Below the pieces are notes generated by a model, which made no database searches, was not told the origin of the DNA, and was given only the letters and a program-made list of their open reading frames with translations. A stretch of 64,000 nt of DNA from Macrostomum lignano (Eukaryota), in NCBI GenBank assembly GCA_002269645.1, contig NIVC01000741.1:310001-374000 (forward strand). The letters run 5' to 3'. The translations under genes and the position numbers were made by a program. The first letter of the stretch is position 1. Each line of letters begins with the position of its first letter. Positions 6,241-50,459 of this stretch are shown here, piece after piece.

Positions 6241-9327
<3,087 letters not shown>

Positions 9328-21435: not shown

Positions 21436-21595
21436 GAGCTTGTTTAGTAAGCCTAGCTAGCAGTACGTACGGTAATGTACATGCGCGGGCCACCGTGCCC
21501 CTTGGCCTATAAAATATACAGAGCGTGGAGGGTTTTGCCTCAACTGAGTTTACTCCAGAATAAGCGAATTGACTTCATTACAATTGGCGACGAGA

Positions 21596-24500: not shown

Positions 24501-25475
24501 AGCTGCCAAGCCTGCCAATCCGTTAAGCTGCATCCGGTGCTGGCTCCAATGCACCCCTGGGTGTGGCCAGACCAGCCCTGGGACCGCATCCACGTTGACT
24601 TTGCCGGGCCGGTTCGAGGCCGCCAGTTTCTCCTCGTAGTCGACTCGCACTCAAAGTGGCCGCATGTGGAGGCCGTGTCAACACTCGAATCGGCCGAGCT
24701 GGTTCGCAAGCTGCGAGTGTTGTTTGCACAATGGGGCCTGCCGAGAGAACTGGTATCGGACAACGGTCCAGCATTCATCAGTCAAGGATTTAGCGATTTC
24801 TGCAAAGCAAATGGAATTCGCCACACAAGAAGCAGTCCATATCACGCCAAGACCAACGGACTGGTGGAACGGCTGGTGAAGTCGTTCAAGATGGCCATGG
24901 AGGCGTCACGGAGCAGTCAGCCGGACCTCGACATCCGCCTGTGCAACTGGCTGCTGGGCTACCGAGCTAGCCCGCACCCAACGACCGGTCGGACACCAGC
25001 GGAGCTCTTCCTGAAGCGGCAGCTCCGGACTCGAATGGACCTGCTGCGGCCGTCAGCCCGGGATCGAGTACTGCGGGAGCAATCTGCCCAGAAACGACAG
25101 CACGACCGGCGGTCGCGGGAGCTGCCGGAGGAGCCGTGGTCGGAGGCCTGGGCCAGGGACTACCGGCCTAATGCGGCGGCCTGGCAACCAGCAAAAGTTC
25201 TCGAGCAGACTGGGCCGCTGAGCTTCCGAGTCGAAACGAGCGACGGCCTGACCTGGCGCCGTCATGCCGACCAACTGCGGGGCCGGCGAGTCGAGAGCGA
25301 CCAACCTGACGGTCCGGCAGCCGGGACCGAGCCAGCTGAAGCTGCGGACTCGACCGGGACCGGCGCGGAGCACCCGGAGCCGGAGCCGCCAGACGCGCCC
25401 TGCGGACTGCAGCCTGCACGCCGGCGACGGCCACCTGAGAAGCTGACCTACTCAAAACTCGGGAGCTGTGATTGA
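21596..25475 (+). pseudogene. Element A gag-pol polyprotein with an in-frame TAG at 22430-22432 and a +1 frameshift near 23635
   Basis: MASVGQLEPYEEGKDW.. Gag with two CCHC knuckles; VND*PLTMQLDTGA protease; RIDD RT; ADASSVG RNase H; HVEH..CQAC, SDNG integrase. The frame moves at aagagagacggac. Confidence 0.92.
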
Positions 25476-27132
25476 TAGGAAGCGGACTTCTTCTGAGAGG
25501 GGAAAAGTGTCATGACTTATGGGGTGGGGCCGCGTGGTAGGGGTGGAGCTTGTTTAGTAAGCCTAGCTAGCAGTACGTACGGTAATGTACATGCGCGGGC
25601 CACCGTGCCCCTTGGCCTATAAAATATACAGAGCGTGGAGGGTTTTGCCTCAACTGAGTTTACTCCAGAATAAGCGAATTGACTTCATTACACCGGTGTG
25701 AGGTGTCAGGAGTGCCAATGTGAGGTGTCAGGAGTGCCGGTGTGAGGTGTCAGGAGTGCCGATGTGAGGTGTCAGGAGTGCCGGTGTGAGGTGTCAGGAG
25801 TGCCGGTGTGAGGTGTCAGGAGCGCCGAGTTGAGGTGTCAGGAGTGCCGGTGTGAGGTGTCAGGAGTGCCAATGTGAGGTGTCAGGAGTGCCGGTGTGAG
25901 GTGTCAGGAGTGCCGATGTGAGGTGTCAGGAGTGCCGGTGTGAGGTGTCAGGAGTGCCGGTGTGAGGTGTCAGGAGTGCCAATGTGAGGTGTCAGGAGTG
26001 CCGGTGTGAGGTGTCAGGAGTGCCAATGTGAGGTGTCAGGAGTGCCGGTGTGAGGTGTCAGGAGTGCCGGTGTGAGGTGTCAGGAGTGCCGGTGTGAGGT
26101 GTCAGGAGTGCCGGTGTGAGGTGTCAGGAGCGCCGAGGTGAGGTGTCAGGAGTGCCGGTGTGAGGTGTCAGGAGTGCCAATGTGAGGTGTCAGGAGTGCC
26201 GGTGTGAGGTGTCAGGAGTGCCAATGTGAGGTGTCAGGAGTGCCGGTGTGAGGTGTCAGGAGTGCCAATGTGAGGTGTCAGGAGTGCCGGTGTGAGGTGT
26301 CAGGAGTGCCGGTGTGAGGTGTCAGGAGTGCCGGTGTGAGGTGTCAGGAGTGCCGGTGTGAGGTGTCAGGAGCGCCGAGGTGAGGTGTCAGGAGTGCCGG
26401 TGTGAGGTGTCAGGAGTGCCAATGTGAGGTGTCAGGAGTGCCGGTGTGAGGTGTCAGGAGTGCCAATGTGAGGTGTCAGGAGTGCCGGTGTGAGGTGTCA
26501 GGAGTGCCGGTGTGAGGTGTCAGGAGTGCCGGTGTGAGGTGTCAGGAGTGCCGGTGTGAGCGGCATGGATATATAGAATTATCGCTGGTCAGAGCTAGGT
26601 GCCACAGCAATCACTGCACCAACGCCCTACAATCCCAAATGCGCCAGGTGTACACCAGAAGAAAGCGCTGAGCAGTTTATTTACATTTTCGCTCTGATAC
26701 CGGAGTGCCTGCTCTGCTCAGAGAAGGCAGCTCAGGTCGAGCACATAATAAGCGCGCACTTGCCGGGCCAGAAACTCCAGACGCAATTGTGGCCCGGTCA
26801 GCTGAGCAAGTCAGGGGCAGAGAGAAGGCGGCCCAGGTGCAGGCGGAGCGGCGCAGCATTCTAACGCTAGAAAACCTTAAGCCACCTCGTCTCCACCCGC
26901 TTGAAGTGCTCAAGAAACTCAAACTTGGCCTAGCTATCTAACCTCTGTCTGCCCGTCTCCACCCGCCCCAGCCCTGCAGTTTGGCATCTGACTGCCCAAT
27001 GCGTGCCTCTCATGTCTTTGACTGTCGCGAGCTGGCGGCTATTCATTGAGCCTGTCTCATTCAAGCCTGAACCGCAGACCCATGCAGATCAAAGCTTGAG
27101 CATTTTTGATTTCCCTTGGCAGGCCGGTCACG

Positions 27133-31791: not shown

Positions 31792-33113
31792 CTAGGCCTG
31801 GTCCCCACCAGCAGCCGCCTCCCTATCCAGCTGCTCCCTCAGTCTGGTTGCCACCTCCTGCGCCAGTAGCTGAGCTGGCGACGACAGCGCCTTGGCGCCG
31901 GCCGCCTGGCCTTCGTCCAGACAGGCCGCCAGGCTGGGGTCGATCGGCAGGCAGCCGAGGAAGGGCAGCGCCTTGGCCCTGGCGAGCTCGCGGCCGCCGC
32001 CGCTGGAGAACGGGTTGCTGCAGCCGGCGCAGTGCGGGCAGGCGAAGCCGCTCATGTTCTCCACGATGCCCAGCACGGCGAGGCCCGTCTTGGCGCAGAA
32101 GTCCAGCTCGCGGCGGACGTCGCCGACGGCCACGATTTGCGGCGTCGTGACGGCCACCGCGCCGCGCCTGCGGCAGGCCGAGCCGACTGGTAGCGCCTCC
32201 AGCACTGCCAGGTGCTCGTCCGTGGTTCCCGGAGGTGTGTCCACCTGGGATAAACCGGGGAAAGGGTGGAGGCTGACACTGCCGACTGCTCGATCTGACA
32301 CTGCTGACTGCTCAATCTGACACTGCTGACTGCTCAATCTGACACTGTTGACTGCTTAATCTGACACTGCTGACTGCTCAATCTGACACTGCTGACTGCT
32401 CAATCTGACACTGCTGACTGCTTAATCTGACACTGCTGACTGCTTAATCTGACACTGCTGACTGCTCAATCTGACACTGCTGACTGCTCGATCTGACACT
32501 GCTGACTGCTCAATCTGACACTGCTGACTGCTCGATCTGACACTGCTGACTGCTCAATCTGACACTGCTGACTGCTCGATCTGACACTGCTGACTGCTCA
32601 ATCTGACACTGCCGACTGCTCAATCTGACACTGCCGACTGCTCGATCTGACACTGCTGACTGCTCAATCTGACACTGCTGAACCCCACACTACTGCAGTG
32701 CTGCTACTTACCACCAGGTAGTCCAGCCGCTGCCAGTGCACATCCCGCACAAACTGGCCCACCATGCTGGTCTTCTTCGGGCCCCGCCAAATCACTGGAT
32801 CGTCTCGACCTTCCAACAGGAAGCCGATCGACATGACTAGGAGTTCGGCGCCGTCTGAGGCAGCTCCGGGCAGCCTCAGGTGCACCGGCACCCAGCCCTC
32901 CGGGCACTGGTGAACCCGCTGGCCCTCCAGACCCAGCATTCTTGGCACACTGGGCCCGCACAGGTCGATGTCCAGCAGGCCGACCCTGTGGCCCGCCTGT
33001 GCCAGGGCCAGCGCCAGCTGCACGCTGACTGTCGACTTTCCGACGCCGCCTTTGCCGGACAGGACCAGCAGAGCCGTGTCGATCCGGGGACCGCCGCTGC
33101 CTTCGGACATCAT
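31792..33113 (-). CDS. NUBP2: Cytosolic Fe-S cluster assembly factor NUBP2/Cfd1; exons 33113-32712 and 32244-31792, ~284 aa
   Basis: [13 protein letters not shown] deviant Walker A; [12 protein letters not shown]; VIWRGPKK; DYLV|[12 protein letters not shown]; [11 protein letters not shown]. No N-terminal 4-Cys motif, so Cfd1 rather than Nbp35. Confidence 0.93.
32273..32680 (-). repeat. 22-bp minisatellite in the NUBP2 intron
   Basis: gactgctcaatctgacactgct on the + strand, about 18 copies. Confidence 0.95.
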
Positions 33114-33169
33114 GCATTGCAGCGAGGTTGGCTGTCTGTCTTGCAAAAATATGAGGCACTTACCTAGCC

Positions 33170-33700
33170 TGATAAAAAGTGTTTACCTAGCTTCAGATAG
33201 TGTTTACCTAGCCTCAGATAGTGTTTACCTAGCCTAAGATAGTGTTTACCTAGCCTGAGATAGTGTTTACCTAGCTTCAGATAGTGTTTACCTAGCCTGA
33301 GAAAGTGTTTACCCAGCCTAAGATAATGTTTACCTAGCCTAAGATAATGTTTACCTAGCCTAAGATAATGTTTACCTAGCCTAAGATAATGTTTACCTAG
33401 CCTAAGATAATGTTTACCTAGCCTCAGATAGTGTTTACCTAGCCTGAGATTGAGTGTTTACCTAGCCTCAGATAGTGTTTACCTAGCCTCAGATAGTGTT
33501 TACCTAGCCTGAGATTGAGTGTTTACCTAGCCTGAGATAGTGTTTAATTGAGCCTAAGATAGAGCGTTTAGTTAAGACTAAGATAAAGTGTTTACCTAGC
33601 CTGAGACAGAATGTTTACCTGGCCTAAGATAGAGTGCCTTGTGTAGCCTGATATTGAGGTTTACCTGAGACTTGAGAGGGAGTGTTTAGCTAGCCTCTAG
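33170..33700 (-). repeat. 21-bp minisatellite between RBM7 and NUBP2
   Basis: agatagtgtttacctagcct(c/g/a) on the + strand, degenerating toward 33700. Confidence 0.92.
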
Positions 33701-34046
33701 GTTGAGTATAATCTAGTAAGCATATGCATATAAAAATACAAGCCAGCACCGTCATCAATTTAGCTTCATAAAAGCACCGGAATTTTTACAAGAGAGAAAC
33801 AATCACTTAGTACAGTACTTATAGTAGACAGAAGGAGCGCACTGCTTACAGTGCCCAGTGAAAACTGTTTACAAGCAAATTGATGCACATTATTTACGAG
33901 CTATTAAAATCTGCAGCTGAAATTAAGAAACAAAAAAGCTGCTCAAATGCATCGCAGACTGAAAAAAATCAATATTGATCGATCCAGGAACCCCGACGCA
34001 AATATATTTTTTATCTGTCGTTAGCTCGTATGGGCAACCGTATTGT

Positions 34047-35373
34047 TTAAAATCGGGCCTGCTTATTTCGGCCATAGTGGCTGTTGAATCCGCTGTCGCT
34101 GGTTGATCGCTTAATGCCGTGCTGCTGATGTTGCTGGCGGTGCTGATGATGCTGCTGATGTTGCTGGCGGTGCTGATGATGCTGCTGATGATGGTGCTGC
34201 TGGTGGTGAACAACTGGCGGAGGGAGCGGCGGTGGCGGCGGCAGCAGAAAGTTGCCAGCTTGCTGATGCTGGCGCTGATGCTGCGGCAGCTGCGGCGGCG
34301 GCAGGAGAGGGAAGCTTGGCGGGGGCGGCGGCGGCATCGGAGGCTGCGGAAGCTGGCGGTGGCGCTGATGCTGTCGCCGGTGGTCGCTGCGGGCCTCCCG
34401 AGCGGCTCTGTCGGCCCGTTCCCGGTCGGCCAGCCGCTCTGTCGGCAGAATCTCCTGCCACTGGCGCTCGTGGCCGCTGCCCTGGCGCGGCTTCACGAGG
34501 AGTTCGGCGCCGCACAGGCGCAAACTCTGCGCAACAAGATGCCGGGATGGCGGGTGAGTTCAACTACCTGTGACAGTATCTGTAATAATACTCACTACCA
34601 CTGACAGTATCTGTAATAATACTCACTACCTGTGACAGTATCTGTAATAATACTCACTACCACTGACAGTATCTGTAATAATACTCACTACCACTGACAG
34701 TATCTGTAATAATACTCACTACCTGTGACAGTATCTGTAATAATACTCACTACCTGTGACAGTATCTGTAATAATACTCACTACCTGTGACAGTATCTCT
34801 ATACAAAACTCACTACTTGTGACACTACTTGCACCACTGCCTGTGACACTTGCATCACTGCCTGTGACACTACTTGCACCACTGCCTGTGACACTTGCAT
34901 CACTGCCTGTGACACTACTTGCATCACTGCCTGTGACACTACTTGCATCACTGCCTGTGACACTACTTGCATCACTGTCTGTGACACTACTTGCATCACT
35001 GCCAGTGACACTTGCATCACTGCCAGTGACACTTGCATCACTGTCTGTGACACTTGCATCACTGCCTGTGACACTACTTGCATCACTGCCTGTGACACTA
35101 CTTGCATCACTGTCTGTGACACTTGCATCACTGCCTGTGCCACGGCATCTGGCAGACGCCACTCACCCTAAACAGGCGGCAGGCATAGAGCACCGACTCC
35201 TCGTGTTTGAAGGTGACGAACGCGTAGCCATTTTTGCCATCCTTGCCGGCCACGAGTTTCACGGGACACTCGAGCGGGCCGGACTGCAGGAAGAGCTCGG
35301 TGAGCAGGTCCGCAGTCACATCGGGGCCCAGGTTGCCAACCCACAGGGTTCTCTCGCGGCTATTGTCATCCAT
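34047..35373 (-). CDS. RBM7: RRM protein of the RBM7/RBM11 family; exons 35373-35167 and 34526-34047, ~228 aa, Q/P/H-rich tail
   Basis: MDDNSRERTLWVGNLGPDVTADLLTELFLQSGP..GKDGKNGYAFVTFKHEESVLYACRLFR|SLRLCGAELLVKPRQGSGH parallels RBM7 (RTLFVGNL..FAFVNFKHEVSV..IKIQFRSGSSH). Confidence 0.8.
34560..35137 (-). repeat. Two adjacent minisatellites in the RBM7 intron (~31/28 bp and 24/21 bp)
   Basis: ctgtgacagtatctgtaataatactcactac (34560-34800) and gtgacactacttgcatcactgcct (34810-35137). Confidence 0.92.
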
Positions 35374-35469
35374 GAAGTCCAGAAACGCTGCAAAAGTAAA
35401 ATGCACCATTGTGAATGCTTTGAGATACTTGGGGACTGCTTTCTGAAGGACCAGGAAGTAACAGGTAAC

Positions 35470-35921
35470 AGCTCAATGAATGATTGAGAGAGGGGTGCAG
35501 CAGCTCAATGAATGATTGAGAGAGGGGTGCAGCAGCTCACTGAATGATTGAGAGAGGGGTGCAGCAGCTCACTGAATGATTGAGAGAGGGATGCAGCAGC
35601 TCACTGAATGATTGAGAGAGGGGTACAGCAGCTCACTGAAGGATTGAGAGAGGGGTGCAGCAGCTCACTGAATGATTGAGAGAGGGGTACAGCAGCTCAC
35701 TGAATGATTGAGAGAGGGGTGCAGCAGCTCACTGAATGATTGAGAGAGGGGTGCAGCAGCTCACTGAATGATTGAGAGAGGGGTGCAGCAGCTCACTGAA
35801 TGATTGAGAGGGGTGCAGCAGCTCACTGAATGATTGAGAGGGGTGCAGCAGCTCACTGAATGATTCAGAGAGGGGTGCAGCAGCTCACTGAATGATCGAG
35901 AGGGGTGCAGCAGCTCACTGA
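35470..35921 (-). repeat. 32-bp minisatellite between CSTF2 and RBM7
   Basis: cagctcactgaatgattgagagaggggtgcag, about 14 copies. Confidence 0.94.
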
Positions 35922-36024
35922 AGGTCAAGGACAAGGCGGCAACCTGATGCAAACAGCTTCTGATATGTACACTCGATAAAAAACACAGAAACCCAGAAGC
36001 CAAAAATATTTTGCACAGGAACAT

Positions 36025-36030
36025 TTTAAT
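36025..36030 (-). terminator. Putative CSTF2 polyadenylation signal ATTAAA
   Basis: About 200 nt after the stop, followed on the minus strand by a GT/T-rich tract (ttttggcttctgggtttctgtgtttttt). Confidence 0.5.
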
Positions 36031-36232
36031 TGATCATATTGAACAGTCATTGAGTAGCAAACATTACAGAATGACAGCAGAGTTGATTAGCTTTTGCATT
36101 GTCCTATCAACAGTTTACTAGTAGCCAGCCAGTACCGGAACACCAGCAGAGATCAGCAGGAACAATGCCTGATGCCTAAGCCGGCACTAAACCAGAGTGA
36201 ATAAATGACAGCGGCAATGAGCACACATTGAG

Positions 36233-38253
36233 TCAGATGTGACCAGCCTTGGCCAGCTGCTCTTTAAGAATCATGATGGACCGGCGCTGGTCCTCAGGCA
36301 GCATGTGGATTTGCTCATCTGACAGCTGCAGCACCTGCATGATGAGCGCCGCCTTCTCTTGATCTCCGCCGGCGATGGCGCCCATCGACAGCTGAGCGCC
36401 GCTGCCCTGCGAAGACTGCGGCTGCTGCGGTTGCTGCGGCTGCGCCTGGGGCGGCGGCGGCGGTGGCGGCTGGCGGTACGGCTGCTGCTGCTGCGGGTAC
36501 ATCTGCTGCTGATGTTGTGGTGGCGGAGGCGGTGGCGGTTGGTGATGGTGGTACATCTGCTGCTGCATCGGAGGCTGCGGAGGCTGAGGCGGCTGGTGTT
36601 GGTAGTGCTGCTGCTGCTGCATTGGCTGATCGACTGGCATTACGGGCGGAATCTGCTCAGTGGTTCTGCTCAGCATAGCGATGGCCACCTTGGGGTCAAC
36701 CAGCTTCATCACAATCTGAGCCTGCAGCAGGGCGTAGGCCAGCTGCGGGTTCTGCAGCAGCATGTTGCGGGCCTCGTGCGGGTTGTTCTGAATGCACTGC
36801 TTCATCTGACGCATCAGCTCGAACATCTGCTCGGGCGGCAGGCTGGCAACCGCCCGGCTGATCTCCTCCGGCGCGTTCTTTGGGTCCACCTGGGCGGTTT
36901 GGGGTTGGCTTTTTACCTGAATTTACATTGTTGTTTCTTATCCCAGCTTTTCATTCATCTCGCTTATCACCTCCCTCTTGCTTAACATGCACCCTTCCTT
37001 GTCCTTTATCCCCTTCCTTCTCCCTAATCCCCTTCCCTGTCCCTTATTCCCTTCCCTGTCCCTTATCCCCTTCCCTGATCCTTATCCCTTTTTCATCCCT
37101 TATCCCCTTCCCTGATCCTTAGCCCTTTTTCATCCCTTATCCCCTTCCCTGATCCTTATCCCTTTTTCATCCCTTATCCCCTTCCCTGATCCTTATCCCT
37201 TTTTCATCCCTTATCCCCTTCCCTGATCCTTAGCCCTTTTTCATCCCTTATCCCCTTCCCTGATCCTTATCCCTTTTTCATCCCTTATCCCCTTCCCTGA
37301 TCCTTATCCCTTTTTCATGCCTTATCCCTTTTAAGCTTTTCATCCCTTATCCCCTTCCCTGATCCTTAGCCCTTTTTCATCCCTTATCCCCTTCCCTGAT
37401 CCTTATCCCTTTTTCATCCCTTATCCCCTTCCCTGATCCTTAGCCCTTTTTCATCCCTTATCCCCTTCCCTGATCCTTATCCCTTTTTCATCCCTTATCC
37501 CCTTCCCTGATCCTTATCCCTTTTTCATCCCTTATCCCCTTCCCTGATCCTTATCCCTTTTTCATCCCTTATCCCCTTCCCTGATCCTTATCCCTTATCC
37601 CCTTCCCTGATCCTTATCCCTTTTTCATCCCTTATCCCCTTCCCTGACCCTTATCCCTTTTTTGTCCCTTACCCCCTTCCCTGACCCTTATCCTTTTTTG
37701 TCCCTTACCCCCTTCCCTGTGTCCACATCCACTGCCGCTTATCCCTCCCTACAGCATACAGAATCCCAAGAGCTCCCGCTCCCACCTTCTCCCCATAAGG
37801 CGAGTCCACAGGCGGGCCGGAGACGCCGGGGCCATGGCCCTGGCCATCCTGCTGTTGCTGCTGCTGCTGCTGGTTCTGCTCGCCAGCGGCCGGGCCGATG
37901 CGCAGCGGCCTGCCGCAGAACTCGATATTCTGCAGATTGCGCAGGGCAGCCTGGGCGGTAGGCAGGTCCTTGTACTCGCAGAAGCCGTAGCCCTTGGGCT
38001 TGCCGGTCTCCCTGTCGTACACGAGGCGGAAGCCGATGACGGGCCCGGCCTGCTCGAACATCTCCTTCAGCCGGTCCTCAGACGCTTCGTAGGGGATGTT
38101 GCCGACGAATATGGAGCGAGCGGTCCGCTCCAGGGCCTCGCGCTCGCGCTGGCCTTGGCTTTGCCTGTCAGCCGCGGCTTGCTGCTGCTGAAGCATTTGC
38201 TGCTGCTGCTGCTGCAGTTGCTGGGGGCCTGGGGCTGCCATTTTGGATTGCAT
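36233..38253 (-). CDS. CSTF2: Cleavage stimulation factor 64 kDa subunit; exons 38253(or 38241)-37786 and 36889-36233, ~370 aa
   Basis: RSIFVGNIPYEASEDRLKEMFEQAGPVIGFRLVYDRETGKPKGYGFCEYKD RRM; hinge ISRAVASLPPEQMFELM..NPQLAYALLQAQ; C-terminal DQEKAALIMQVLQLSDEQIHMLPEDQRRSIMILKEQL. Confidence 0.96.
36990..37720 (-). repeat. 37-bp minisatellite in the CSTF2 intron
   Basis: tccttatccctttttcatcccttatccccttccctga on the + strand. Confidence 0.94.
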
Positions 38254-38267
38254 GCAATAAATTGAGT
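38251..38267 (-). other. Genomic copy of a spliced-leader 3' end (ACTCAATTTATTGCATG) fused to CSTF2
   Basis: The minus strand reads ..gcgctata ACTCAATTTATTGCATG caatccaaaATGgcagcc. The 17-mer equals the 3' end of the Macrostomum lignano SL as I recall it (..GAAGACTCAATTTATTGCATG); not verified by search. Confidence 0.65.
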
Positions 38268-38324
38268 TATAGCGCTCCGTGATTAGGTGAGCTTGTGAGA
38301 TAAGGCTAGCTCAAGGACTTCGGA

Positions 38325-39115
38325 AGCAGCAGCCTACTCAAGTGACTGGGAAGCAGCAGCCTACTCAAGTGACTGGGAAGCAGCAGCCTACTCAAGTGAC
38401 TGGGAAGCAGCAGCCTACTCAAGTGTCAGGGAAGGGAAGCAGCAGCCTACTCAAGTGACAGGGAAGCAGCAGCCTACTCAAGTGTCAGGGAAGGGAAGCA
38501 GCAGCCTACTCAAGTGTCAGGGAAGGGAAGCAGCAGCCTACTCAAGAGACAGGGAAGCAGCAGCCTACCCAAGTGTCAGGGAAGGGAAGCAGCAGCCTAC
38601 TCAAGAGACAGGGAAGCAGCAGCCTACTCAAGTGTCAGGGAAGGGAAGCAGCAGCCTACTCAAGTGACAGGGAAGCAGCAGCCTACTCAAGTGACAGAAA
38701 AGGGAAGCAGCAGTCTACTCAAGTGACAGGGAAGCAGCAGCCTACTCAAGTGACAGGGAAGCAGCAGCCTACTCAAGTGTCAGGGAAGGGAAGCAGCAGC
38801 CTACTCAAGTGTCAGGGAAGGGAAGCAGCAGCCTACTCAAGTGTCAGGGAAGGGAAGCAGCAGCCTACTCAAGTGACAGGGAAGCAGCAGCCTACTCAAG
38901 TGAAAGGGAAGCAGGAGCCTACTCAAGTGAAAGGGAAGCAGCAGCCTACTCAAGTGAAAGGGAAGCAGCAGCCTACTCAAGTGACAGGAAAGCAGCAGCC
39001 CACTCAAGTGACAGGAAAGCAGCAGCCCACTCAAGTAACAGGGAAGCAGCAGCCTACTCAAGTGACAGGGAGGGGTAGCAGCAGCCTATTCAGGTGACAG
39101 GGAAGGGTAGCAGCA
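38325..39115 (-). repeat. 27/32-bp minisatellite between ZCCHC4 and CSTF2
   Basis: gggaagcagcagcctactcaagtg(a/t)ca on the + strand, with or without an extra gggaa. Confidence 0.94.
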
Positions 39116-39284
39116 GTTTCCCTCGAACTTGGGAATTAACAAAGAAAGCAAAACAGAAAACGAAGATGTTTAGACTTCAAGAAGATTGAGCACGGTGTAT
39201 TCTGGCGGTTACAAGTAGAAAAATGCATCAGAAATGTACAGAGCAGATTTCTTCATCGCAAGCAAATGCATCTCAGTAAGCAGC

Positions 39285-40928
39285 TCAGTTCTTCGCCGAC
39301 AAGCCAGACCGGCAGTCGTGAGAGTCGATATACTTGGCCTTGACGCATCTGTTGCAGCGCTGGCAGTGCAGCCGGGCAGGCGGGTGCAGCGTGGCGCACG
39401 TGCCGCAGGCTGCACAATGCGGATTCCAGTGGGCCGAGTGGCGGGCGCAGACGGAGCACCAGCTGGTGCCGGGAGGCGGCGGCAGGCGGGACTCGGGCAC
39501 GTTGGAGAACAGGCGGACGGCAGAGACCGAGGCGCTGCGCAGCTTGGCGTGATTGGCGTAACTCAGCTGGCAGTCGTGCAGGCTGAGCCGGGGGCGCAGC
39601 CACCGCTTGCCCAGGTAGTAGGGCGCCGCCACGGCTGTGAACACCTGTCGGGAATGCGGGGAGGGGTTGGCGCTCGGTTGCTGTGAATAGGACAGGTGAG
39701 ACAGATCTGATAGGACAGGTGAGACAGATCTGATAGGACAGGTGAGACAGATCTGATAGGACAGGTGAGACAGATCTGATAGGACAGGTGAGACAGATCT
39801 GATAGGACAGGTGAGACAGATCTGATAGGACAGGTGAGACCGATCTGATAGGACAGGTGAGACAGATCTGATAGGACAGGTGAGACAGATCTGATAGGAC
39901 AGGTGAGACAGATCTGATAGGACAGGTGAGACAGATCTGATAGGACAGGTGAGACAGATCTGATAGGACAGGTGAGACAGATCTGATAGGACAGGTGAGA
40001 CAGATCTGATAGGACAGGTGAGACAGATCTGATAGGACAGGTGGGACAGATCTGATAGGACAGGTGGGACAGATCTGATAGGACAGGTGAGACAGATCTG
40101 ATAGGACAGGTGAGACAGATCTGATGTCAGGTGAAAACAAGAGTTGCCCACCTCGCAGTGGCCGGCAGCCGCGGCGAGATCTGCCAGGTGCTGCAGGCAG
40201 TCCATCAAGGGGGTCAGCAGGCCGCCAAAGGGCGGGTCAGCCACAATGAGGCAGACGGAGTCCGAGCCCCGCTTGGCCGCCAGCCAGCTGACGAATCTGT
40301 CTCGCCCACCCGGTCGCAGAAACGCGGCGTTGAACATGTTGAAGGCCAGACAGTCGGGGAAGAATTCGGCCAGCCGCAGGTCGGCGTCAAGCAGGAGGCT
40401 GCGGCAGCGCCGGCCGCCGATTGCGTAGCGGGCAGCCTCGTGCAGGCGGGGGCAGCCGACGCAGACGAGCTGCCGGCAGCGGAGGCGGCGCACCAGGCGG
40501 AGCAGGTAGGCCAGGCTGGGCGGGGAGAAGAAGTACTGCGAGGACTGCCGGGTGGTGAGTGGCGGCAGGAAGACGGTGGGGGCCAGCAGGCGCCGCTTCG
40601 GTAGCCGCGGCAGCAGCTGGTGGGTGGCGCAGGCCGCCAGCTCGGAGCTGCCGAGTGCCAGCCGGCCGCAGTTCAGGCAGTAGGCGCGCAGCCGGCGCGG
40701 CGTGGCGAGGGCTTCGTCCAAGCGGCAGCAGTTCGGCGCTGACAAGGCGGAGGCCGCGCCGGACTTGGCCGAGCAGGCGCCAGGCCGCCTGGTGAAGGAG
40801 CAGCAGTGGCGCCGGGTGAATCGACCGGCGCCGTCGCGCAACACCAGGGCGAGCATGGGGCCGTGCAGCGGGCAGGCGGGCGCAGCCTCCTCAGCCGCAT
40901 CAAGGCCACACTGCTGTATGGAGGCCAC
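39285..40928 (-). CDS. ZCCHC4: 28S rRNA N6-adenosine methyltransferase ZCCHC4; exons 40928-40152 and 39644-39285; start codon uncertain (SL-donated AUG or ATG at 40961)
   Basis: APACPLHGP zinc finger; LVCVGCPRLHE; LLLDADLR; FNMFN; catalytic ADPPFGGL; PYY; SYANH; VRLFSNVP; CSVC..NPHCAACGTC..HCQRCNRCVK Cys-rich domain. Confidence 0.9.
   Translation of the reverse strand: MASIQQCGLDAAEEAAPACPLHGPMLALVLRDGAGRFTRRHCCSFTRRPGACSAKSGAASALSAPNCCRLDEALATPRRLRAYCLNCGRLALGSSELAACATHQLLPRLPKRRLLAPTVFLPPLTTRQSSQYFFSPPSLAYLLRLVRRLRCRQLVCVGCPRLHEAARYAIGGRRCRSLLLDADLRLAEFFPDCLAFNMFNAAFLRPGGRDRFVSWLAAKRGSDSVCLIVADPPFGGLLTPLMDCLQHLADLAAAAGHCEVGNSCFHLTSDLSHLSYQICLTCPIRSVPPVLSDLSHLSYQICLTCPIRSVSPVLSDLSHLSYQICLTCPIRSVSPVLSDLSHLSYQICLTCPIRSVSPVLSDRSHLSYQICLTCPIRSVSPVLSDLSHLSYQICLTCPIRSVSPVLSDLSHLSYSQQPSANPSPHSRQVFTAVAAPYYLGKRWLRPRLSLHDCQLSYANHAKLRSASVSAVRLFSNVPESRLPPPPGTSWCSVCARHSAHWNPHCAACGTCATLHPPARLHCQRCNRCVKAKYIDSHDCRSGLSAKN
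39686..40125 (-). repeat. 23-bp minisatellite in the ZCCHC4 intron
   Basis: gacaggtgagacagatctgatag on the + strand, about 19 copies. Confidence 0.96.
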
Positions 40929-41367
40929 CTGTAAAGCTGGGCGCCGATCTCGACTTCGCATGAGGATGGACTGCTGAAAATCGCGTGCCAGAATATTCGA
41001 TGAGATCGAGCCCAGGACCTCGGCAGGTGAATCTTGAGGCAAGATATGGGGCAACTATGAGCCAAGACAAAGCTGGAGACCGGGCAAAAAGGCCTCGAGA
41101 ATCCGCAGGATTCGACTCGAGAGAGAGAAAGAGGAGGGAAGGACCTCTAAATATTGTATGGCCAAAATAGACATCGAACCAATGACCTCCTAAAACTAGT
41201 ATTAGTAGGTATAGTATCGAGCTTTGACCTTTGACAATTCAATTGACAACATAAGAGTTCGAGCCTAGGACCCCTAGAATTGTATGCACAGACTAGAGAT
41301 GGGAGCCAAAAGTAAAACAAAAAATACGAAAGAATTGGCAAAACCACAAGAACAAGCAATGTCTGCT

Positions 41368-41373
41368 TTTATT
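41368..41373 (-). terminator. Putative polyadenylation signal AATAAA upstream of ZCCHC4
   Basis: Followed on the minus strand by a GT/T-rich tract (ttgttcttgtggttttgcc..ttttttgttttacttttgg); about 440 nt upstream of the ZCCHC4 acceptor. Confidence 0.5.
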
Positions 41374-41842
41374 AAAGAAACAGTAAACTGACCATAATCG
41401 GCGAGAATGCATATGAAAATCACCGCCAGCCAGCAGGTGCCAACCGCACTGGCCGCTCAATATTACATTTGTCTGGGCGCACCTGGGCTCGATTAAGTTG
41501 AGCATACTACTGACAAGCCTGCACAAAATAGTAGTAACGTACTAAAGCAAACTCACTAGAGCTCCAAAAACTACCAAATCAAGAAAATAAATTCGCGTAC
41601 TTCAGTTCCTAAGTTGGGAAATTGAAATTAGAAAGCGGTTGCACCAGAACCAGCAATTTCAACTGAGGAGCTTCGAAGTTAGCCCTTGAATAAAATTGGC
41701 GAAACGTAAGCATTAGAAGGACTGCGATGGATAGTGGACAGGCGAATTACAAATGAGGGCGCATTAAACAATGAACACAGGTGGTCTGGGACCTTTTGTG
41801 CTCAGAAAATTTAACTTTGTATAAAGTTCACGATGTGACAAA

Positions 41843-44800
41843 GGATTTTGGAGTAACTGGGGCGACCTCAATGATGTAGCAGAGAGGATTCTGGAGTAAC
41901 TGGGGCGACCTCAATGATGTAGCAGAGAGGATTCTGGAGTAACTGGGGCGACCTCAATGATGTAGCAGAGAGGATTCTGGAGTAACTGGGGCGACCTCAA
42001 TGATGTAGCAGAGAGGATTCTGGAGTAACTGGGGCGACCTCAATGATGTAGCAGAGAGAATTCTGGAGTAACTGGGGCGACCTCAATGATGTAGCAGAGA
42101 GGATTCTGGAGTAACTGGGGCGACCTCAATGATGTAGCAGAGAGAATTCTGGAGTAACTGGGGCGACCTCAATGATGTAGCAGAGAGGATTCTGGAGTAA
42201 CTGGGGCGACCTCAATGATGTAGCAGAGAGGATTCTGGAGTAACTGGGGAGATCTCCACGATGAGACAGAGGATTCTGGAGTAACTGGGGCGATCTACGT
42301 GATGTGGCGGATAGGATTCTGGAGTAACTGGGGCGACCTCAATGATGTAGCAGAGAGGATTCTGGTGTAACTGGGGAGATCTCCACGATGAGACAGAGGA
42401 TTCTGGAGTAACTGGGGCGACCTCAATGATGTAGCAGAGAGGATTCTGGAGTAACTGGGGCGACCTCAATGATGTAGCAGAGAGGATTCTGGAGTAACTG
42501 GGGAGATCTCCACGATGAGACAGATGATTCTGGAGTAACTGGGGCGATCTACGTGATGTGGCGGAGAGGATTCTGGAGTAGCTGGGGCGACCTCAATGAT
42601 GTAGCAGAGAGGATTCTGGTGTAACTGGGGAGATCTCCACGATGAGACAGAGGATTCTGGAGTAACTGGGGCGACCTCAATGATGTAGCAGAGAGGATTC
42701 TGGTGTAACTGGGGAGATCTCCACGATGAGACAGAGGATTCTGGAGTAACTGGGGCGATCTACGTGATGTGGCGGATAGGATTCTGGAGTAACTGGGGCG
42801 ACCTCAATGATGTAGCAGAGAGGATTCTGGTGTAACTGGGGAGATCTCCACGATGAGACAGAGGATTCTGGAGTAACTGGGGCGACCTCAATGATGTAGC
42901 AGAGAGGATTCTGGAGTAACTGGGGCGATCTACGTGATGTGGCGGATAGGATTCTGGAGTAACTGGGGCGACCTCAATGATGTAGCAGAGAGGATTCTGG
43001 TGTAACTGGGGAGATCTCCACGATGAGACAGAGGATTCTGGAGTAACTGGGGCGACCTCAATGATGTAGCAGAGAGGATTCTGGAGTAGCTGGGGCGACC
43101 TCAATGATGCAGCAGAGAGGATTCTGGTGTAACTGGGGAGATCTCCACGATGAGACAGAGGATTCTGGAGTAACTGGGGCGACCTCAATGATGTAGCAGA
43201 GAGGATTCTGGAGTAACTGGGGCGACCTCAATGATGTAGCAGAGAGAATTCTGGAGTAACTGGGGCGACCTCAATGATGTAGCAGAGAGGATTCTGGAGT
43301 AACTGGGGCGACCTCAATGATGTAGCAGAGATGATTCTGGAGTAACTGGGGAGATCTCCACGATGAGACAGAGGATTCTGGAGTAACTGGGGCGATCTAC
43401 GTGATGTGGCGGATAGGATTCTGGAGTAACTGGGGCGACCTCAATGATGTAGCAGAGAGGATTCTGGTGTAACTGGGGAGATCTCCACGATGAGACAGAG
43501 GATTCTGGAGTAACTGGGGCGACCTCAATGATGTAGCAGAGAGGATTCTGGAGTAACTGGGGCGACCTCAATGATGTAGCAGAGAGGATTCTGGAGTAAC
43601 TGGGGAGATCTCCACGATGAGACAGATGATTCTGGAGTAACTGGGGCGATCTACGTGATGTGGCGGAGAGGATTCTGGAGTAGCTGGGGCGACCTCAATG
43701 ATGTAGCAGAGAGGATTCTGGTGTAACTGGGGAGATCTCCACGATGAGACAGAGGATTCTGGAGTAACTGGGGCGACCTCAATGATGTAGCAGAGAGGAT
43801 TCTGGTGTAACTGGGGAGATCTCCACGATGAGACAGAGGATTCTGGAGTAACTGGGGCGATCTACGTGATGTGGCGGATAGGATTCTGGAGTAACTGGGG
43901 CGACCTCAATGATGTAGCAGAGAGGATTCTGGTGTAACTGGGGAGATCTCCACGATGAGACAGAGGATTCTGGAGTAACTGGGGCGACCTCAATGATGTA
44001 GCAGAGAGGATTCTGGAGTAACTGGGGCGATCTACGTGATGTGGCGGATAGGATTCTGGAGTAACTGGGGCGACCTCAATGATGTAGCAGAGAGGATTCT
44101 GGTGTAACTGGGGAGATCTCCACGATGAGACAGAGGATTCTGGAGTAACTGGGGCGACCTCAATGATGTAGCAGAGAGGATTCTGGAGTAGCTGGGGCGA
44201 CCTCAATGATGCAGCAGAGAGGATTCTGGTGTAACTGGGGAGATCTCCACGATGAGACAGAGGATTCTGGAGTAACTGGGGCGACCTCAATGATGTAGCA
44301 GAGAGGATTCTGGAGTAACTGGGGCGACCTCAATGATGTAGCAGAGAGAATTCTGGAGTAACTGGGGCGACCTCAATGATGTAGCAGAGAGGATTCTGGA
44401 GTAACTGGGGCGACCTCAATGATGTAGCAGAGATGATTCTGGAGTAACTGGGGAGATCTCCACGATGAGACAGAGGATTCTGGAGTAACTGGGGCGATCT
44501 ACGTGATGTGGCGGATAGGATTCTGGAGTAACTGGGGCGACCTCAATGATGTAGCAGAGAGGATTCTGGTGTAACTGGGGAGATCTCCACGATGAGACAG
44601 AGGATTCTGGAGTAACTGGGGCGACCTCAATGATGTAGCAGAGAGGATTCTGGAGTAACTGGGGCGACCTCAATGATGTAGCAGAGAGGATTCTGGAGTA
44701 ACTGGGGAGATCTCCACGATGAGACAGATGATTCTGGAGTAACTGGGGCGATCTACGTGATGTGGCGGAGAGGATTCTGGAGTAGCTGGGGCGACCTCAA

Positions 44801-46925
44801 TGATGTAGCAGAGAGGATTCTGGTGTAACTGGGGAGATCTCCACGATGAGACAGAGGATTCTGGAGTAACTGGGGCGACCTCAATGATGTAGCAGAGAGG
44901 ATTCTGGTGTAACTGGGGAGATCTCCACGATGAGACAGAGGATTCTGGAGTAACTGGGGCGATCTACGTGATGTGGCGGATAGGATTCTGGAGTAACTGG
45001 GGCGACCTCAATGATGTAGCAGAGAGGATTCTGGTGTAACTGGGGAGATCTCCACGATGAGACAGAGGATTCTGGAGTAACTGGGGCGACCTCAATGATG
45101 TAGCAGAGAGGATTCTGGAGTAACTGGGGCGATCTACGTGATGTGGCGGATAGGATTCTGGAGTAACTGGGGCGACCTCAATGATGTAGCAGAGAGGATT
45201 CTGGTGTAACTGGGGAGATCTCCACGATGAGACAGAGGATTCTGGAGTAACTGGGGCGACCTCAATGATGTAGCAGAGAGGATTCTGGAGTAGCTGGGGC
45301 GACCTCAATGATGCAGCAGAGAGGATTCTGGTGTAACTGGGGAGATCTCCACGATGAGACAGAGGATTCTGGAGTAACTGGGGCGACCTCAATGATGTAG
45401 CAGAGAGGATTCTGGAGTAACTGGGGCGACCTCAATGATGTAGCAGAGAGGATTCTGGTGTAACTGGGGAGATCTCCACGATGAGACAGATGATTCTGGA
45501 GTAACTGGGGCGATCTACGTGATGTGGCGGAGAGGATTCTGGAGTAGCTGGGGCGACCTCAATGATGTAGCAGAGAGGATTCTGGTGTAACTGGGGAGAT
45601 CTCCACGATGAGACAGAGGATTCTGGAGTAACTGGGGCGACCTCAATGATGTAGCAGAGAGGATTCTGGTGTAACTAGGGAGATCTCCACGATGAGACAG
45701 ATGATTCTGGAGTAACTGGGGCGATCTACGTGATGTGGCGGAGAGGATTCTGGAGTAGCTGGGGCGACCTCAATGATGTAGCAGAGAGGATTCTGGTGTA
45801 ACTAAGGAGATCTCCACGATGAGACAGATGATTCTGGAGTAACTGGGGCGACCTCAATGATGTAGCAGAGAGGATTCTGGTGTAACTGGGGAGATCTCCA
45901 CGATGAGACAGAGGATTCTGGAGTAACTGGGGCTACCTCAATGATGTAGCAGAGAGGATTCTGGCGTAACTGGGGCGACCTCAATGATGTAGCAGAGAGG
46001 ATTCTGATGTAACTGGGGAGATCTCCACGATGAGACAGAGGATTCTGGAGTAACTGGGGCGATCTACGTGATGTGGCGGATAGGATTCTGGAGTAACTGG
46101 GGCGACCTCAATGATGTAGCAGAGAGGATTCTGGTGTAACTGGGGAGATCTCCACGATGAGACAGAGGATTCTGGAGTAACTGGGGCGACCTCAATGATG
46201 TAGCAGAGAGGATTCTGGAGTAACTGGGGCGATCTACGTGATGTGGCGGATAGGATTCTGGAGTAACTGGGGCGACCTCAATGATGTAGCAGAGAGGATT
46301 CTGGTGTAACTGGGGAGATCTCCACGATGAGACAGATGATTCTGGAGTAACTGGGGCGATCTACGTGATGTGGCGGAGAGGATTCTGGAGTAGCTGGGGC
46401 GACCTCAATGATGTAGCAGAGAGGATTCTGGTGTAACTGGGGAGATCTCCACGATGAGACAGAGGATTCTGGAGTAACTGGGGCGACCTCAATGATGTAG
46501 CAGAGAGGATTCTGGTGTAACTAGGGAGATCTCCACGATGAGACAGATGATTCTGGAGTAACTGGGGCGATCTACGTGATGTGGCGGAGAGGATTCTGGA
46601 GTAGCTGGGGCGACCTCAATGATGTAGCAGAGAGGATTCTGGTGTAACTAGGGAGATCTCCACGATGAGACAGATGATTCTGGAGTAACTGGGGCGATCT
46701 ACGTGATGTGGCGGAGAGGATTCTGGAGTAACTGGGGCGACCTCAATGATGTAGCAGAGAGGATTCTGGAGTAGCTGGGGCGACCTCAATGATGCAGCAG
46801 AGAGGATTCTGGTGTAACTGGGGAGATCTCCACGATGAGACAGAGGATTCTGGAGTAACTGGCGCGATCTACGTGATATGGCGGAGAGGATTCTGGAGTA
46901 ACTGGGGCGATCTCCGTGATGTGGG
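41843..46925. repeat. 5-kb complex tandem array of 43/41-bp subunits with a 1102-bp higher-order period
   Basis: Constant GGATTCTGG(A/T)GTAACTGGGG plus three variable tails. Identical ORFs recur at 42212/43314/44416 and 42760/43862/44964 (spacing 1102). Confidence 0.95.
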
Positions 46926-47249
46926 ATTTGAGCAGAAAGCGGTTCTGTCACAAGCGCAGCAGGCAGCATTCGCCAGAGCGCTTAAATCGTTACTGTTTGG
47001 CCCCTGAAGTAGGCAAAGGGTAGCGGCAGCCAGTCAAAGTGTAATTATGCCTAGCGAATAGAGACCAGAGTTTATCTCGGGCAGTGTTTTACAGCAGGGG
47101 GCGCGTACGCTATTAGAGAAAAAAAATAATTTACAGAGCGAACGGAACAGAATGATTACGCAACTGAAAGTAGATCTAAGGAACACAACTATGTAACAAG
47201 TAGAAAGCCTTCATTCGCGCATGCAGTTGAACCTTTGCAACTCTGCAAA

Positions 47250-48942
47250 TCAAGTACCAATAGTGGTTTGAATAGCCCGTACGTACTGGCAGGGCACCCA
47301 GTACAGCCAGTACATGGACTGCTCTGTGGTGCCCAGCTGCAGTCCGACAATGTGGTGCGCCTCCTGGCCTTCGATGGGCTCGCTGACTATCCGCTTGATT
47401 GACGACATCGGGATCTTGTTGGTGCGCTCCTTAGTTCCGATCCACAGCTGGTCGATTTCCAGCTTGAATGTCAGGCGAACCTGCGGGCAGGCAGGCGGAT
47501 GCTGGCGATTCTCGTGTTGGTGGGGGCGACTCTCATGTTTGGGGGGGGGGGCGATTCTCGTGTTGGTGGGGGCGACTCTCATGTTTGGGGGGGCGATTCT
47601 CGTGTTGGTGGGGGCGACTCTCATGTTTGGGGGGCGATTCTCGTGTTGGTGGGGCGATTCTCATGTTTGGGGGGGGGGGGCGATTCTCATGTTTGAGGGG
47701 GCGATTCTCGTGTTGGTGGGGGCGACTCTCATGTTTGGGGGGGGGCGATTCTCGTGTTGGTGGGGGCGACTCTCATGTTTGGGGGGGGCGATTCTCGTGT
47801 TGGTGGGGGCGACTCTCATGTTTGGGGGGGCGATTCTCGTGTTGGTGGGGGCGATTCTCATGTTTGGGGGGGGGGCGATTCTCATGTTTGAGGGGGCGAT
47901 TCTCGTGTTGGTGGGGGCGATTCTCGTGTTGGTGTGGGCGATTCTCGTGTTGGTGGGGGCGATTCTCATGTTTGGGGGGGGGCGATTCTCATGTTTGGGG
48001 AGGGCATTCTCAGCATGGGGGGCATATTCATTTGGGGGGGAATTCTCATGTTTAGGGGGCGATTTTCATGTTTGGGGGGATTTTTATGTTTGGGAGGCGA
48101 TTCTTATGTTTGGGGGGGGGGGGTGTGATTCTCATTTTGAAGGGGCAATTATCATGCTGGTGGGACAACTCCAGTCTTAGTTGCAGTTCAGGTCAAACGG
48201 CCCCAAATACCTTGGCACCCTGTCGATTGTACATGCCACTAAGCGGGGCCGGGGGCAGCGGCAAGTTGGCATTGAGAATTCCGGGCGTCAGGTCGTCCGG
48301 CCGGCCGTACTTGTCCAGCACTCGGCGGTGCAGGTCGCGCTGCGACAGACGAACCGCGCCAGCGCCATCTGAGTTGCCTGGATTGTTCGCTTTCGACCTG
48401 CGGACAAACGTTTGAGCGAAATTGCTCACCCGGACACAGACATCCCATCTCGGCCAGACCACAAGCAGACACCCCACCTCACACACGAGCTGAATCGCCT
48501 TATTCGCCTACCTGGCATCAGCCGCTTCGCCAGCCGCGTCCTGACGCCGTACCGACGCCAAGCTGTCCGGCGTGCTGCCCACGAGCATCAGCTTGGCACC
48601 GTCGCCGACCCCGAGCTCACTGAGTCGCCGATCGTCATGGCAGAGGCCTCTGAACATGAGCTTCTGCATGTCAACCGGAACGCCAGTCAATTCCTGAAGC
48701 TGCCGTTTCAGAGAGATGACCTTAGCCGAGACCGGCAAGGTCAGGTCAATCTTGCGCTTATTGAAGATGACCTTCAGTGACACTGGTGAGGAGTCTGCAT
48801 CCGCTTCCAGTTCCGGTTCTGCGGCCGCTTCTTCTGCTGCCTCTTGAGTCGCTGATGAGCCCTCTGGTGCTGCCTCATCGCCATCTGCACAGATGGAAGT
48901 CTGCGGCTGCATCTCAGCAACTGTCGTGTGGTCTTCGCTCAT
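47250..48942 (-). CDS. UBFD1: Ubiquitin domain-containing protein UBFD1; exons 48942-48512, 48397-48211, 47480-47250, ~282 aa
   Basis: UBL domain LKVIFNK..MQKLMFRG..GAKLMLVGS; HRRVLDKYGRPDD; PLSGMYNRQGAK|VRLTFKLEIDQLWIGTKERTNKIPMSSIK..YWLYWVPCQYV. Confidence 0.93.
47505..48130 (-). repeat. G-rich compound minisatellite in UBFD1 intron 2
   Basis: Alternating ggggcgattctc-gtgttggtg and ggggcga(t/c)tctc-atgtttg units with variable G runs. Confidence 0.92.
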
Positions 48943-50459
48943 AGCTCTAGGTAACAGAAAAGTCAGAATTCAAATGTAATAGCCCACCCCAGCAATTTTG
49001 AGAAAGGCTACATATTGGAAAAAGAAAAAGGAACACTCAACTCAACATTTAAAAAACTATTATGAAGATTATTAGTCTATTTTTTATTTTACAAGCTCAA
49101 AGACCTGATACAGATTTTTATATTTTTTCATTTTCATTATCAATAAGTCCTTAAAATTTAACAAATGGCATCCCAACTGAGATTTAAAAATTCAAAATTC
49201 AAAACTAGGCAATACTACCAGTTGAAAAATGAAATTAGTGTTTATACAAATTCATACATTGGCAAGAGCTTTGGCCCAAAACAAAAACATCACAAGGGAT
49301 TCAATAAACTGTTCCACTTTATAGACAAAATATCTAGACTTATTTTTGATATTATTTGAGTAAAAAATAGACAAAGTGAAAGTTTAAAGTCTTGAAATGA
49401 GCAATATAGCTGTGATCATGCTATATTAATTGAGTTTTTCTCTTTATATCTAAAGCTGAGTGGACTGGTCGATCGACCAGGTTTAACGCATATGTCCTCT
49501 TAGATGGCTGCCAACTCAAATGCGGGACTTATATATATCAATGCAGAATTTTCCTATGCAACAAATAGGCTATTTTAATGTTGAATTTTTTAAATTAGGT
49601 AGGGTTGCTTGCTTAACAACAATTAAGTAGAGAAAACTCAAAATCAACATTTTAGTTCTGCCAATGCATTTTGACCACAATTGGTCATCTTCAAGGCAGA
49701 CGCGTCAATTAATCACACAGAACCAAGTTATATATTTTATTTAAGAAATGAAGACTGTACAATGCCATGTGCAAATCAATTTTAGTCTAGTCCAGTTAAC
49801 AAGAGAAAGAAAACCTAAATAAAGTTAACGAGACTGCCAATGTAGCTAAAACACATTGAGTTGGTAGCTTGCATCCCCCCATGGCTAACTGGCTGTTCCA
49901 ATTTGGTTTCTGAGTAATTTTTTAAATTAAGTCTGTTAAAAAGCAGAAAACTGGTTTGTTAACCTTCTTTGGCCACTTTTCCTGCTCTGAACTGAAAATT
50001 TGCAACAATTTTGAGCAATTGCGCCACAACTTTTTCCTATCTTGGCAGTGCATTTTTTCTCCAGTAGGGGTTTTGAGGAGTTCTAAATGGCTGCATTTGT
50101 ACACTTGGACCCTTGCTAACTGGTGAAAAGTAAAATTCAATGCATAAACTTGCAAGCCTCTCACTGTAGCAAGCAGTGAATGTACACTAAAAAAAATTCA
50201 GTGCTTTAAACTGGGAAGTTCAAATGCAAACTGTTCCTTGAGTTTTAAACTTTCAAAGAAAAGACTTATATTGCTAGAAAGATCTTTCAATGGTGAGTTT
50301 GGGAAAATAAGTTTTTTTGCTTTAAGTATGAAAAATAAAAGCACAGCATTCAAAAAAATGATTTCCATACTTTTAACTTTCTACAAAGATTGTACTCATT
50401 TTGGGGTTGAATGGGGTTTCAACTGACCCCCACCAGTTGGGGGTTTCAATTTTTAATTG

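Follow-up and report, generated by a model that had tools for sequence, protein, structure and literature searches.

We analyzed a 64,000-nucleotide (nt) stretch of the Macrostomum lignano genome (assembly Mlig_3_7, GCA_002269645.1; contig NIVC01000741.1, positions 310,001 to 374,000), which we call the window. Five genes lie on its minus strand, in the order UBFD1, ZCCHC4, CSTF2, RBM7, and NUBP2. We consider it likely that they form a single operon whose transcript is resolved by spliced-leader (SL) trans-splicing, of the kind already described for M. lignano. In two paralogous copies of the locus, RNA-based gene models run from UBFD1 across a minisatellite spacer and into ZCCHC4. At CSTF2, the assembly itself contains the end of the spliced leader, joined to the first exon.

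The two other copies are on contigs NIVC01003158.1 (L001) and NIVC01004038.1 (L002), and on both, the five genes have the order and orientation seen in the window. The locus retrieved for the CSTF2 protein, L003, comes from NIVC01000741.1 itself and is identical to the window; its coordinates were converted as window position = 48242 - L003 position. The features that we refer to below are as follows, from the 5' end of the cluster to its 3' end; a slash marks a splice junction.

48943..49400, minus strand: AT-rich unique region 5' of UBFD1, the presumed promoter and transcription start of the unit
47250..48942, minus strand: UBFD1 coding region, 3 exons (48942-48512, 48397-48211, 47480-47250), 282 amino acids (aa)
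41842..46922, minus strand: 43-nt minisatellite of ~120 copies, in the UBFD1 3' region and the spacer
41368..41373, minus strand: AATAAA followed by a GU/U-rich tract, the probable UBFD1 poly(A) signal, kept in all three locus copies
40974..40975, minus strand: ZCCHC4 acceptor AG, GATTTTCAG/CAGTCC, used exactly by chimeric annotated RNAs
39285..40973, minus strand: ZCCHC4, a ribosomal RNA N6-methyladenosine (m6A) methyltransferase gene, 2 exons (coding 40961-40152 and 39680-39285)
38322..39105, minus strand: 27-nt minisatellite filling the ZCCHC4-CSTF2 spacer, with 71 nt of unique sequence up to the CSTF2 exon
38251..38267, minus strand: SL 3' end ACTCAATTTATTGCATG (final 17 nt of the leader), immediately next to CSTF2 exon 1 (CAATCCAAA-ATG)
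36233..38250, minus strand: CSTF2 (CstF-64), exons 38250-37786 (ATG at 38241) and 36889-36233
36025..36030, minus strand: ATTAAA followed by a GU/U-rich tract, the probable CSTF2 poly(A) signal
35469..35922, minus strand: 32-nt minisatellite in the CSTF2-RBM7 spacer, ending 80 nt before the RBM7 acceptor
35388..35389, minus strand: RBM7 acceptor AG, TTTTGCAG/CG, 14 nt before the ATG at 35373, recurring in L001 and L002
34047..35387, minus strand: RBM7, 2 exons (coding 35373-35167 and 34526-34047), with 24/45-nt and 31-nt intron arrays (34563-35143)
33160..33632, minus strand: 21-nt minisatellite in the RBM7-NUBP2 spacer, ending 19 nt before the first candidate acceptor
33132..33141, minus strand: NUBP2 candidate acceptors, three AGs in AAG/ACAG/ACAG/CC, of which the middle one is used by the fused model P0002
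31792..33113, minus strand: NUBP2, 2 exons (33113-32712 and 32244-31792), whose intron is a 22-nt array (32273-32681)

The identities of the genes come from assigning their open reading frames (ORFs) with Pfam and PDB. Pfam found ubiquitin and PH_UBFD1_C domains in UBFD1, N6-adenineMlase in ZCCHC4, RRM_1, CSTF2_hinge, and CSTF_C in CSTF2, RRM_1 in RBM7, and a NUBPL-type ParA domain in NUBP2. In the PDB search, the best match of the fourth gene was RBM7, and the second gene matched ZCCHC4 (6uca). All five genes have clean and complete GT-AG models with one or two introns each, which bears out the initial annotation's description of five unrelated housekeeping genes on a single strand. The CSTF2 coding model is listed from 38253 (38253-37786, 36889-36233), and the protein that starts at its second ATG matches BOX15_Mlig006421g3 exactly. 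The NUBP2 model and M. lignano BOX15_Mlig019661g1 share 99% identity. As the definition of an operon asks, no opposite-strand gene lies within the cluster, and the next gene 3' of NUBP2 is convergent. Rfam and tRNA scans of the window found no non-coding RNAs.

M. lignano has one 35-nt SL, CGGTCTCTTACTGCGAAGACTCAATTTATTGCATG, which ends in AUG and is found on ~30% of genes, and ~15% of genes have been assigned to operons of two to nine genes each (PMC5730564, PMC8629364). The acceptor motif is [T/C]TNCAG. Repeats inflate the distances between the genes of an operon, and the repeat-adjusted distance peaks near 100 bp. Also, 18% of the operons start with a gene that is not trans-spliced, and operons of just two or three genes make up 93% of those published (PMC5730564, PMC8629364). 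The published rule for an operon is a repeat-adjusted distance of <1 kb together with a trans-spliced downstream gene (PMC8629364).

In our cluster, the stop-to-ATG gaps are 6288, ~1031, 859, and 933 nt, in agreement with the initial annotation (6.3 kb for the first gap and 0.9-1.0 kb for the last three). Tandem arrays account for 81, 76, 54, and 52% of these gaps, in order, and for 75% of the spacers overall. The gaps are thus largely minisatellite, as had been proposed, but this is not special to the spacers: arrays make up 84% of the introns, as well as 7% of the exons and 30% of the whole window. Because the introns are array-rich too, the arrays belong to the non-coding DNA around the genes rather than to intercistronic regions. 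(Simple and tandem repeats are 15% of the M. lignano genome.) After adjusting for repeats, the stop-to-acceptor distances are 1195 (including the 3' untranslated region, or UTR), 250, 391, and 434 nt. The last three spacers are therefore within the published limit, and so is the first if it is counted from the AATAAA at 41373, which lies 400 nt before the ZCCHC4 acceptor. The unique sequence between array and exon is just 71 nt for CSTF2, 80 nt for RBM7, and 19 nt for NUBP2, which leaves little room for separate promoters. The acceptor motif itself is less informative: YTNCAG has a density of 0.0068 per nt on the sense strand, so a match to it counts for little by itself.

Evidence that two of the genes share a precursor comes from read-through from UBFD1 into ZCCHC4. 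The Mlig_3_7 annotation was built from RNA-seq (with StringTie and TACO) and was then divided by the TBONE pipeline wherever there were SL or poly(A) peaks; among the assembled transcripts, ~7% are multi-gene precursors. Because of this origin, we count its UBFD1-ZCCHC4 models as RNA evidence. Protein P0128 (475 aa, named "partial") from L002 follows UBFD1 to ...YWLYWVPC and then continues out of frame into ZCCHC4 exon 1. Joining the donor CCCTGCCA/GTACGT to GATTTTCAG/CAGTCC, which has a TTTTCAG acceptor, rebuilds P0128 exactly, over all 475 aa. In L001, the equivalent splice yields a protein of 525 aa whose stop is at 7134, which agrees with the annotated model. In the window, the last UBFD1 exon contains the cryptic donor TGCCA/GTACGT, with 47287 as the final exon base. 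So RNA-based models in both L001 and L002 cross the minisatellite spacer. A chimera of this type is the expected by-product when an upstream donor meets a trans-splice acceptor on one precursor.

These models also place the 5' end of ZCCHC4. Its first exon base is 40973, which is 12 nt before the ATG at 40961. The initial annotation put the acceptor at 40930-29, but that AG is inside the reading frame, and the annotated RNAs use 40975-74 instead. The use of this acceptor is seen in cis only, in the chimeric annotated models. The ZCCHC4 intron is a 23-nt array (39687-40125), with an alternative acceptor 36 nt downstream, at 39644.

Several database proteins from these loci should not be taken at face value. 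The models at L001 1297-7134 and L002 2335-8409 include P0128, the out-of-frame UBFD1-ZCCHC4 chimera; P0127 is a UBFD1 model whose N-terminus is duplicated; and P0002 is a fusion of RBM7 and NUBP2 that uses cryptic splice sites. All three are annotation by-products and not real proteins. We flag the chimeric proteins (UBFD1-ZCCHC4 and RBM7-NUBP2) as by-products of operon transcription or of gene prediction.

UBFD1 is probably the first gene of the unit. The initial annotation proposed the AG at 48948-47 as a trans-splice acceptor for UBFD1. However, three database UBFD1 proteins start with LPRAM, which corresponds to TTACCTAGAGCT-ATG, and the annotated transcripts start 12-14 nt 5' of the ATG. 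The transcripts therefore include this AG, which is probably not an acceptor. No further AG occurs upstream for ~60 nt, and there is an in-frame TGA 30 nt upstream. Together, these observations suggest that UBFD1 has a transcription start of its own, ~13 nt before the ATG, and that it is the promoter-proximal gene. Upstream of UBFD1 are ~10 kb of AT-rich DNA without sizeable ORFs. Within the gene, a 21-nt array occupies positions 47504-48119 of intron 2.

At CSTF2, the trans-splice junction can be read from the assembly. The leader tail is directly 5' of exon 1, its ATG is in frame with CSTF2, and it is also present in L002 (9981-9997), so it is found in two of the three copies of the locus. 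L001 instead has ...ACTC-TGTTGAATTTCAG/CAATCCAAA-ATG, with a canonical TTTCAG acceptor at the identical junction. In the assembly, the site comes in two versions, the acceptor TGTTGAATTTCAG and the leader AATTTATTGCATG. The window copy has no acceptor at CSTF2 because these 13 nt (38263-38251) read as the SL 3' end. Whatever its origin, the block can only derive from an SL-bearing CSTF2 mRNA, and it therefore records trans-splicing between 38251 and 38250. In L001 and L002, the coding sequences annotated for CSTF2 are labeled "partial" and begin with KM... and SKM..., a few nt from the junction. More broadly, the CSTF2 and RBM7 coding sequences are open up to annotated 5' ends beside the acceptor sites. 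We found no other partial match to the leader near a gene start in the window, L001, or L002.

For RBM7, the acceptor at 35389-88 that the initial annotation proposed is present and recurs in the other copies, and in L002 the first full codon that follows TTTTGCAG/CG opens the annotated coding sequence, so the annotated mRNA 5' end coincides with the acceptor. For NUBP2, the AG proposed at 33141-40 does exist, and it recurs in L001 and L002, but it is only one of three candidate AGs; we expect that one of the three is the acceptor. The poly(A) signals with GU/U-rich elements at 41373 and 36030 are both present, as had been reported.

Some smaller observations concern NUBP2. In the window copy only, an out-of-frame ATG (ATGCATGATG; 33113-33123, minus strand) lies 4 nt before the start codon; the sequence at this position is ATTGCTGATG in L001 and ATTGATGATG in L002. 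A NUBP2 contig (L004) from a related Macrostomum-like sample (SRR28338163) has 82% protein identity and no intron. We considered whether the 47-nt 5' stretch of this contig (L004 1-47), which ends in ATATTTGATG or ...AAACAATATTTGATG, might be a leader. It vaguely resembles the end of a flatworm SL, but it could not be shown to be one, so we disregarded it.

We propose the following mechanism. RNA polymerase II would start in the AT-rich region just 5' of UBFD1 and read through ~17 kb, and UBFD1 would retain its own short capped leader. The upstream messages would be cleaved and polyadenylated, for instance after the AATAAA at 41373 and the ATTAAA at 36030, and the downstream coding regions would receive the 35-nt SL at an acceptor a few nt before the ATG; this processing is visible in part in the gene models and the junction described above. 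The predicted SL addition sites are 40975-74 for ZCCHC4, between 38251 and 38250 for CSTF2, 35389-88 for RBM7, and one AG of 33141-33132 for NUBP2. To judge from the sequence, the terminal AUG of the leader would be in frame in ZCCHC4 and CSTF2 and could start translation there. The minisatellites in the spacers and introns may be fast-evolving passengers rather than operon signals. If the leader's AUG were used, it would add M-QSIL to ZCCHC4 (40961-40973) and M-QSK to CSTF2 (38241-38253). In RBM7, it would begin a 23-codon upstream ORF, out of frame and overlapping the start.

Several points weigh against a single operon. The RNA evidence reached us second-hand, through annotated gene models, and the read-through models come only from L001 and L002: the window copy has a 6.3-kb spacer, and its genes are annotated separately. 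No chimeric model joins ZCCHC4 to CSTF2 or CSTF2 to RBM7 among the annotated models. The fused RBM7-NUBP2 model P0002 was considered as evidence of read-through and rejected, as it uses several cryptic sites and looks poorly predicted. A promoter could fit into the 400 nt of unique sequence that precede ZCCHC4. The conservation of the acceptors among the three copies carries little weight because the copies are so similar (92-99% identical). Finally, ~60% of trans-spliced genes in M. lignano lie outside operons. The main alternative is a tight cluster of independently transcribed genes, with promoters in or next to the spacers, each gene having its own trans-spliced outron or its own start site; the raw spacers of 0.9-6.3 kb, the separate annotation of the genes in the window copy, and the share of trans-spliced genes outside operons would suit such an arrangement. 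But three of the acceptors are preceded by merely 19-80 nt of unique sequence, read-through RNAs link UBFD1 to ZCCHC4 in two copies, and the repeat-adjusted distances conform to the published operon rule, so we consider independent transcription distinctly improbable. The initial annotation's single SL-resolved polycistronic unit gains from the UBFD1-ZCCHC4 read-through, the SL junction of CSTF2, and the 5' end of RBM7, even though, of the four acceptors it named, the one for ZCCHC4 was wrong and the one for UBFD1 probably so. A single promoter and continuous transcription over the last three spacers would complete the operon as we picture it.

The initial annotation went further and raised the possibility that the operon regulates itself, with its products CstF-64 and RBM7 acting on its own intercistronic RNA. 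The presence of CSTF2 and RBM7 in the same cluster invites this idea, and Evans et al. are said to have linked CstF-64 to SL2 in C. elegans in 2001. That coupling depends on a dedicated SL2, however, whereas M. lignano has a single SL and no SL2-type system. Enrichment in RNA-processing genes is typical of operons generally, so it is not a signal here, and no sequence feature indicates autoregulation. Gene order also fails to support the idea: CSTF2 has unrelated genes as its neighbors in two parasitic flatworms (Echinococcus granulosus and Cichlidogyrus), where the cluster around it is not conserved. We found nothing in favor of feedback and regard it as very improbable. In the Echinococcus CSTF2 transcript contig (L006), we found no leader.

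How did the leader sequence come to be in the assembly? Mlig_3_7 was polished with Pilon, using Illumina DNA reads as well as RNA-seq reads that were mapped with STAR, and we think that the SL tail is probably an artefact of polishing with RNA-seq reads. Thirteen nt have been swapped for 13 nt, with exactly 8 substitutions, no insertions or deletions, and perfect identity on the flanks. The four bases upstream of the block, ACTC, happen to match the leader, and the next mismatches between leader and genome (at -18, -19, and -21) were left unaltered. By our calculation, the default filters of STAR allow up to 8 mismatches for a 50-nt read aligned end to end, where 50 nt is an assumed read length. 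This pattern is what base-level polishing by end-to-end leader-bearing reads would give. Alternatively, the SL tail may be genuine genomic sequence. In that case, a cDNA made from trans-spliced CSTF2 mRNA would have recombined with its own locus and overwritten the acceptor, with the upstream junction at the ACTC microhomology. The exact 17-nt match to the SL is present in two contigs that differ at nearby single-nucleotide polymorphisms, with identical block boundaries in both, and the third copy retains the acceptor. Also, according to a published remark, the first "SL RNA gene" reported for M. lignano maps to the 5' end of a protein-coding gene. But the use of RNA-seq reads in polishing, the equal-length block with its untouched upstream mismatches, and the coincidence of 8 substitutions with the default limit for a read of the assumed length all count against recombination. 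CSTF2 also keeps its intron (37785-36890, with a 37-nt array at 36992-37719), so the intron loss by which RNA-mediated gene conversion would be recognized is not seen. We therefore hold recombination with a cDNA to be a doubtful alternative, and it is unlikely that a trans-spliced mRNA, copied back into the operon locus that encodes it, wiped out the acceptor in two of the three copies. As a candidate for independent genomic evidence of the SL block, we considered P0126 (locus L008), but this is an unrelated metagenome sequence with no match to the window.

Mlig_3_7 can thus carry SL sequence that was written in at trans-splice sites, and if polishing is the cause, other parts of the assembly may have corrupted acceptors at highly expressed genes. 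If instead the block is real, it would directly document a flow of information from RNA to DNA at an animal operon, and would be a case, caught in the act, of the RNA-mediated gene conversion that has long been proposed for intron loss. It would also be an animal counterpart of the relic leaders of dinoflagellate SL retrogenes (Slamovits & Keeling 2008; PMC6050394, PMC5585692), in which the leader is likewise encoded in DNA directly 5' of the coding region; here, too, the encoded part starts just after the leader's internal AG. Compared with those, the block here is only 17 nt long and in a single copy, and lacks an upstream AG. Furthermore, CSTF2 keeps its intron and its place in the cluster, and the block may be a polishing artefact.

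The three copies of the locus are similar in their exons (97-99.8% identity, or 93-94% for the low-complexity RBM7 exon 2) and in most of their unique non-coding sequence (92-98%). In the five genes, a single minisatellite makes up most of nearly every intron, and array families are at matching sites in the three copies, with copy numbers that vary up to ~7-fold. For instance, the 43-nt array has 17.8 copies in L001 and in L002, versus ~120 in the window. The NUBP2 intron measures 467 nt in the window, compared with ~90 and 134 nt in the other copies. UBFD1 intron 1 contains a 1.4-kb array in both L001 and L002, where the window has just one unit. Minisatellite turnover can thus stretch an operon spacer, from 0.8 kb of array in two copies to 5 kb in the third.

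L001 1-6340 and L002 1045-7401 align as a single block at 98.9% identity that covers the UBFD1 half of the locus, including its arrays. From just before ZCCHC4, the array lengths of L001 and L002 diverge, and L002 has an extra insertion of ~365 nt there. L002 looks like a mosaic, which could be a recombinant or an assembly chimera.

SL operons are already documented genome-wide in M. lignano, on this very assembly (Wudarski et al. 2017, PMC5730564; Ustyantsev & Berezikov 2021, PMC8629364). Those operons share with our cluster their co-oriented conserved housekeeping genes, YTNCAG-type acceptors just 5' of the ATG, one leader of 35 nt, spacers that tandem repeats have lengthened but whose repeat-adjusted distances are well below 1 kb, and a first gene that need not be trans-spliced. 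We see no difference in kind, although five genes exceeds the usual size. In the literature that we searched, this five-gene cluster is not named, and we did not find its gene IDs in the papers or supplements. Our analysis adds a well-dissected example to the thousands of M. lignano operons that were inferred only in bulk. Only the leader sequence in the DNA is potentially surprising, and for it a polishing artefact must first be excluded. The SL2-type operons of C. elegans also have polycistronic precursors, 3' end formation that is spatially coupled to trans-splicing of the next gene, and an enrichment in housekeeping and RNA-processing genes. But they use a dedicated SL2 and ~100-nt spacers with a U-rich element, whereas the cluster here has one leader and minisatellite spacers of 0.9-6.3 kb.

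Elsewhere in the window, two adjacent Ty3/gypsy-type long terminal repeat (LTR) retrotransposon bodies lie on the plus strand at ~17100-25500, with long open frames for gag, protease, reverse transcriptase, and integrase. Their presence fits the reported LTR-element content of the M. lignano genome (21%). On the minus strand, a gene for an ARF-family GTPase (6444-9318) has a TTTCAG acceptor at 9366-9371, 46 nt ahead of the ATG, and its intron contains 30/31-nt minisatellites (6423-8422); this architecture matches that of the five cluster genes.

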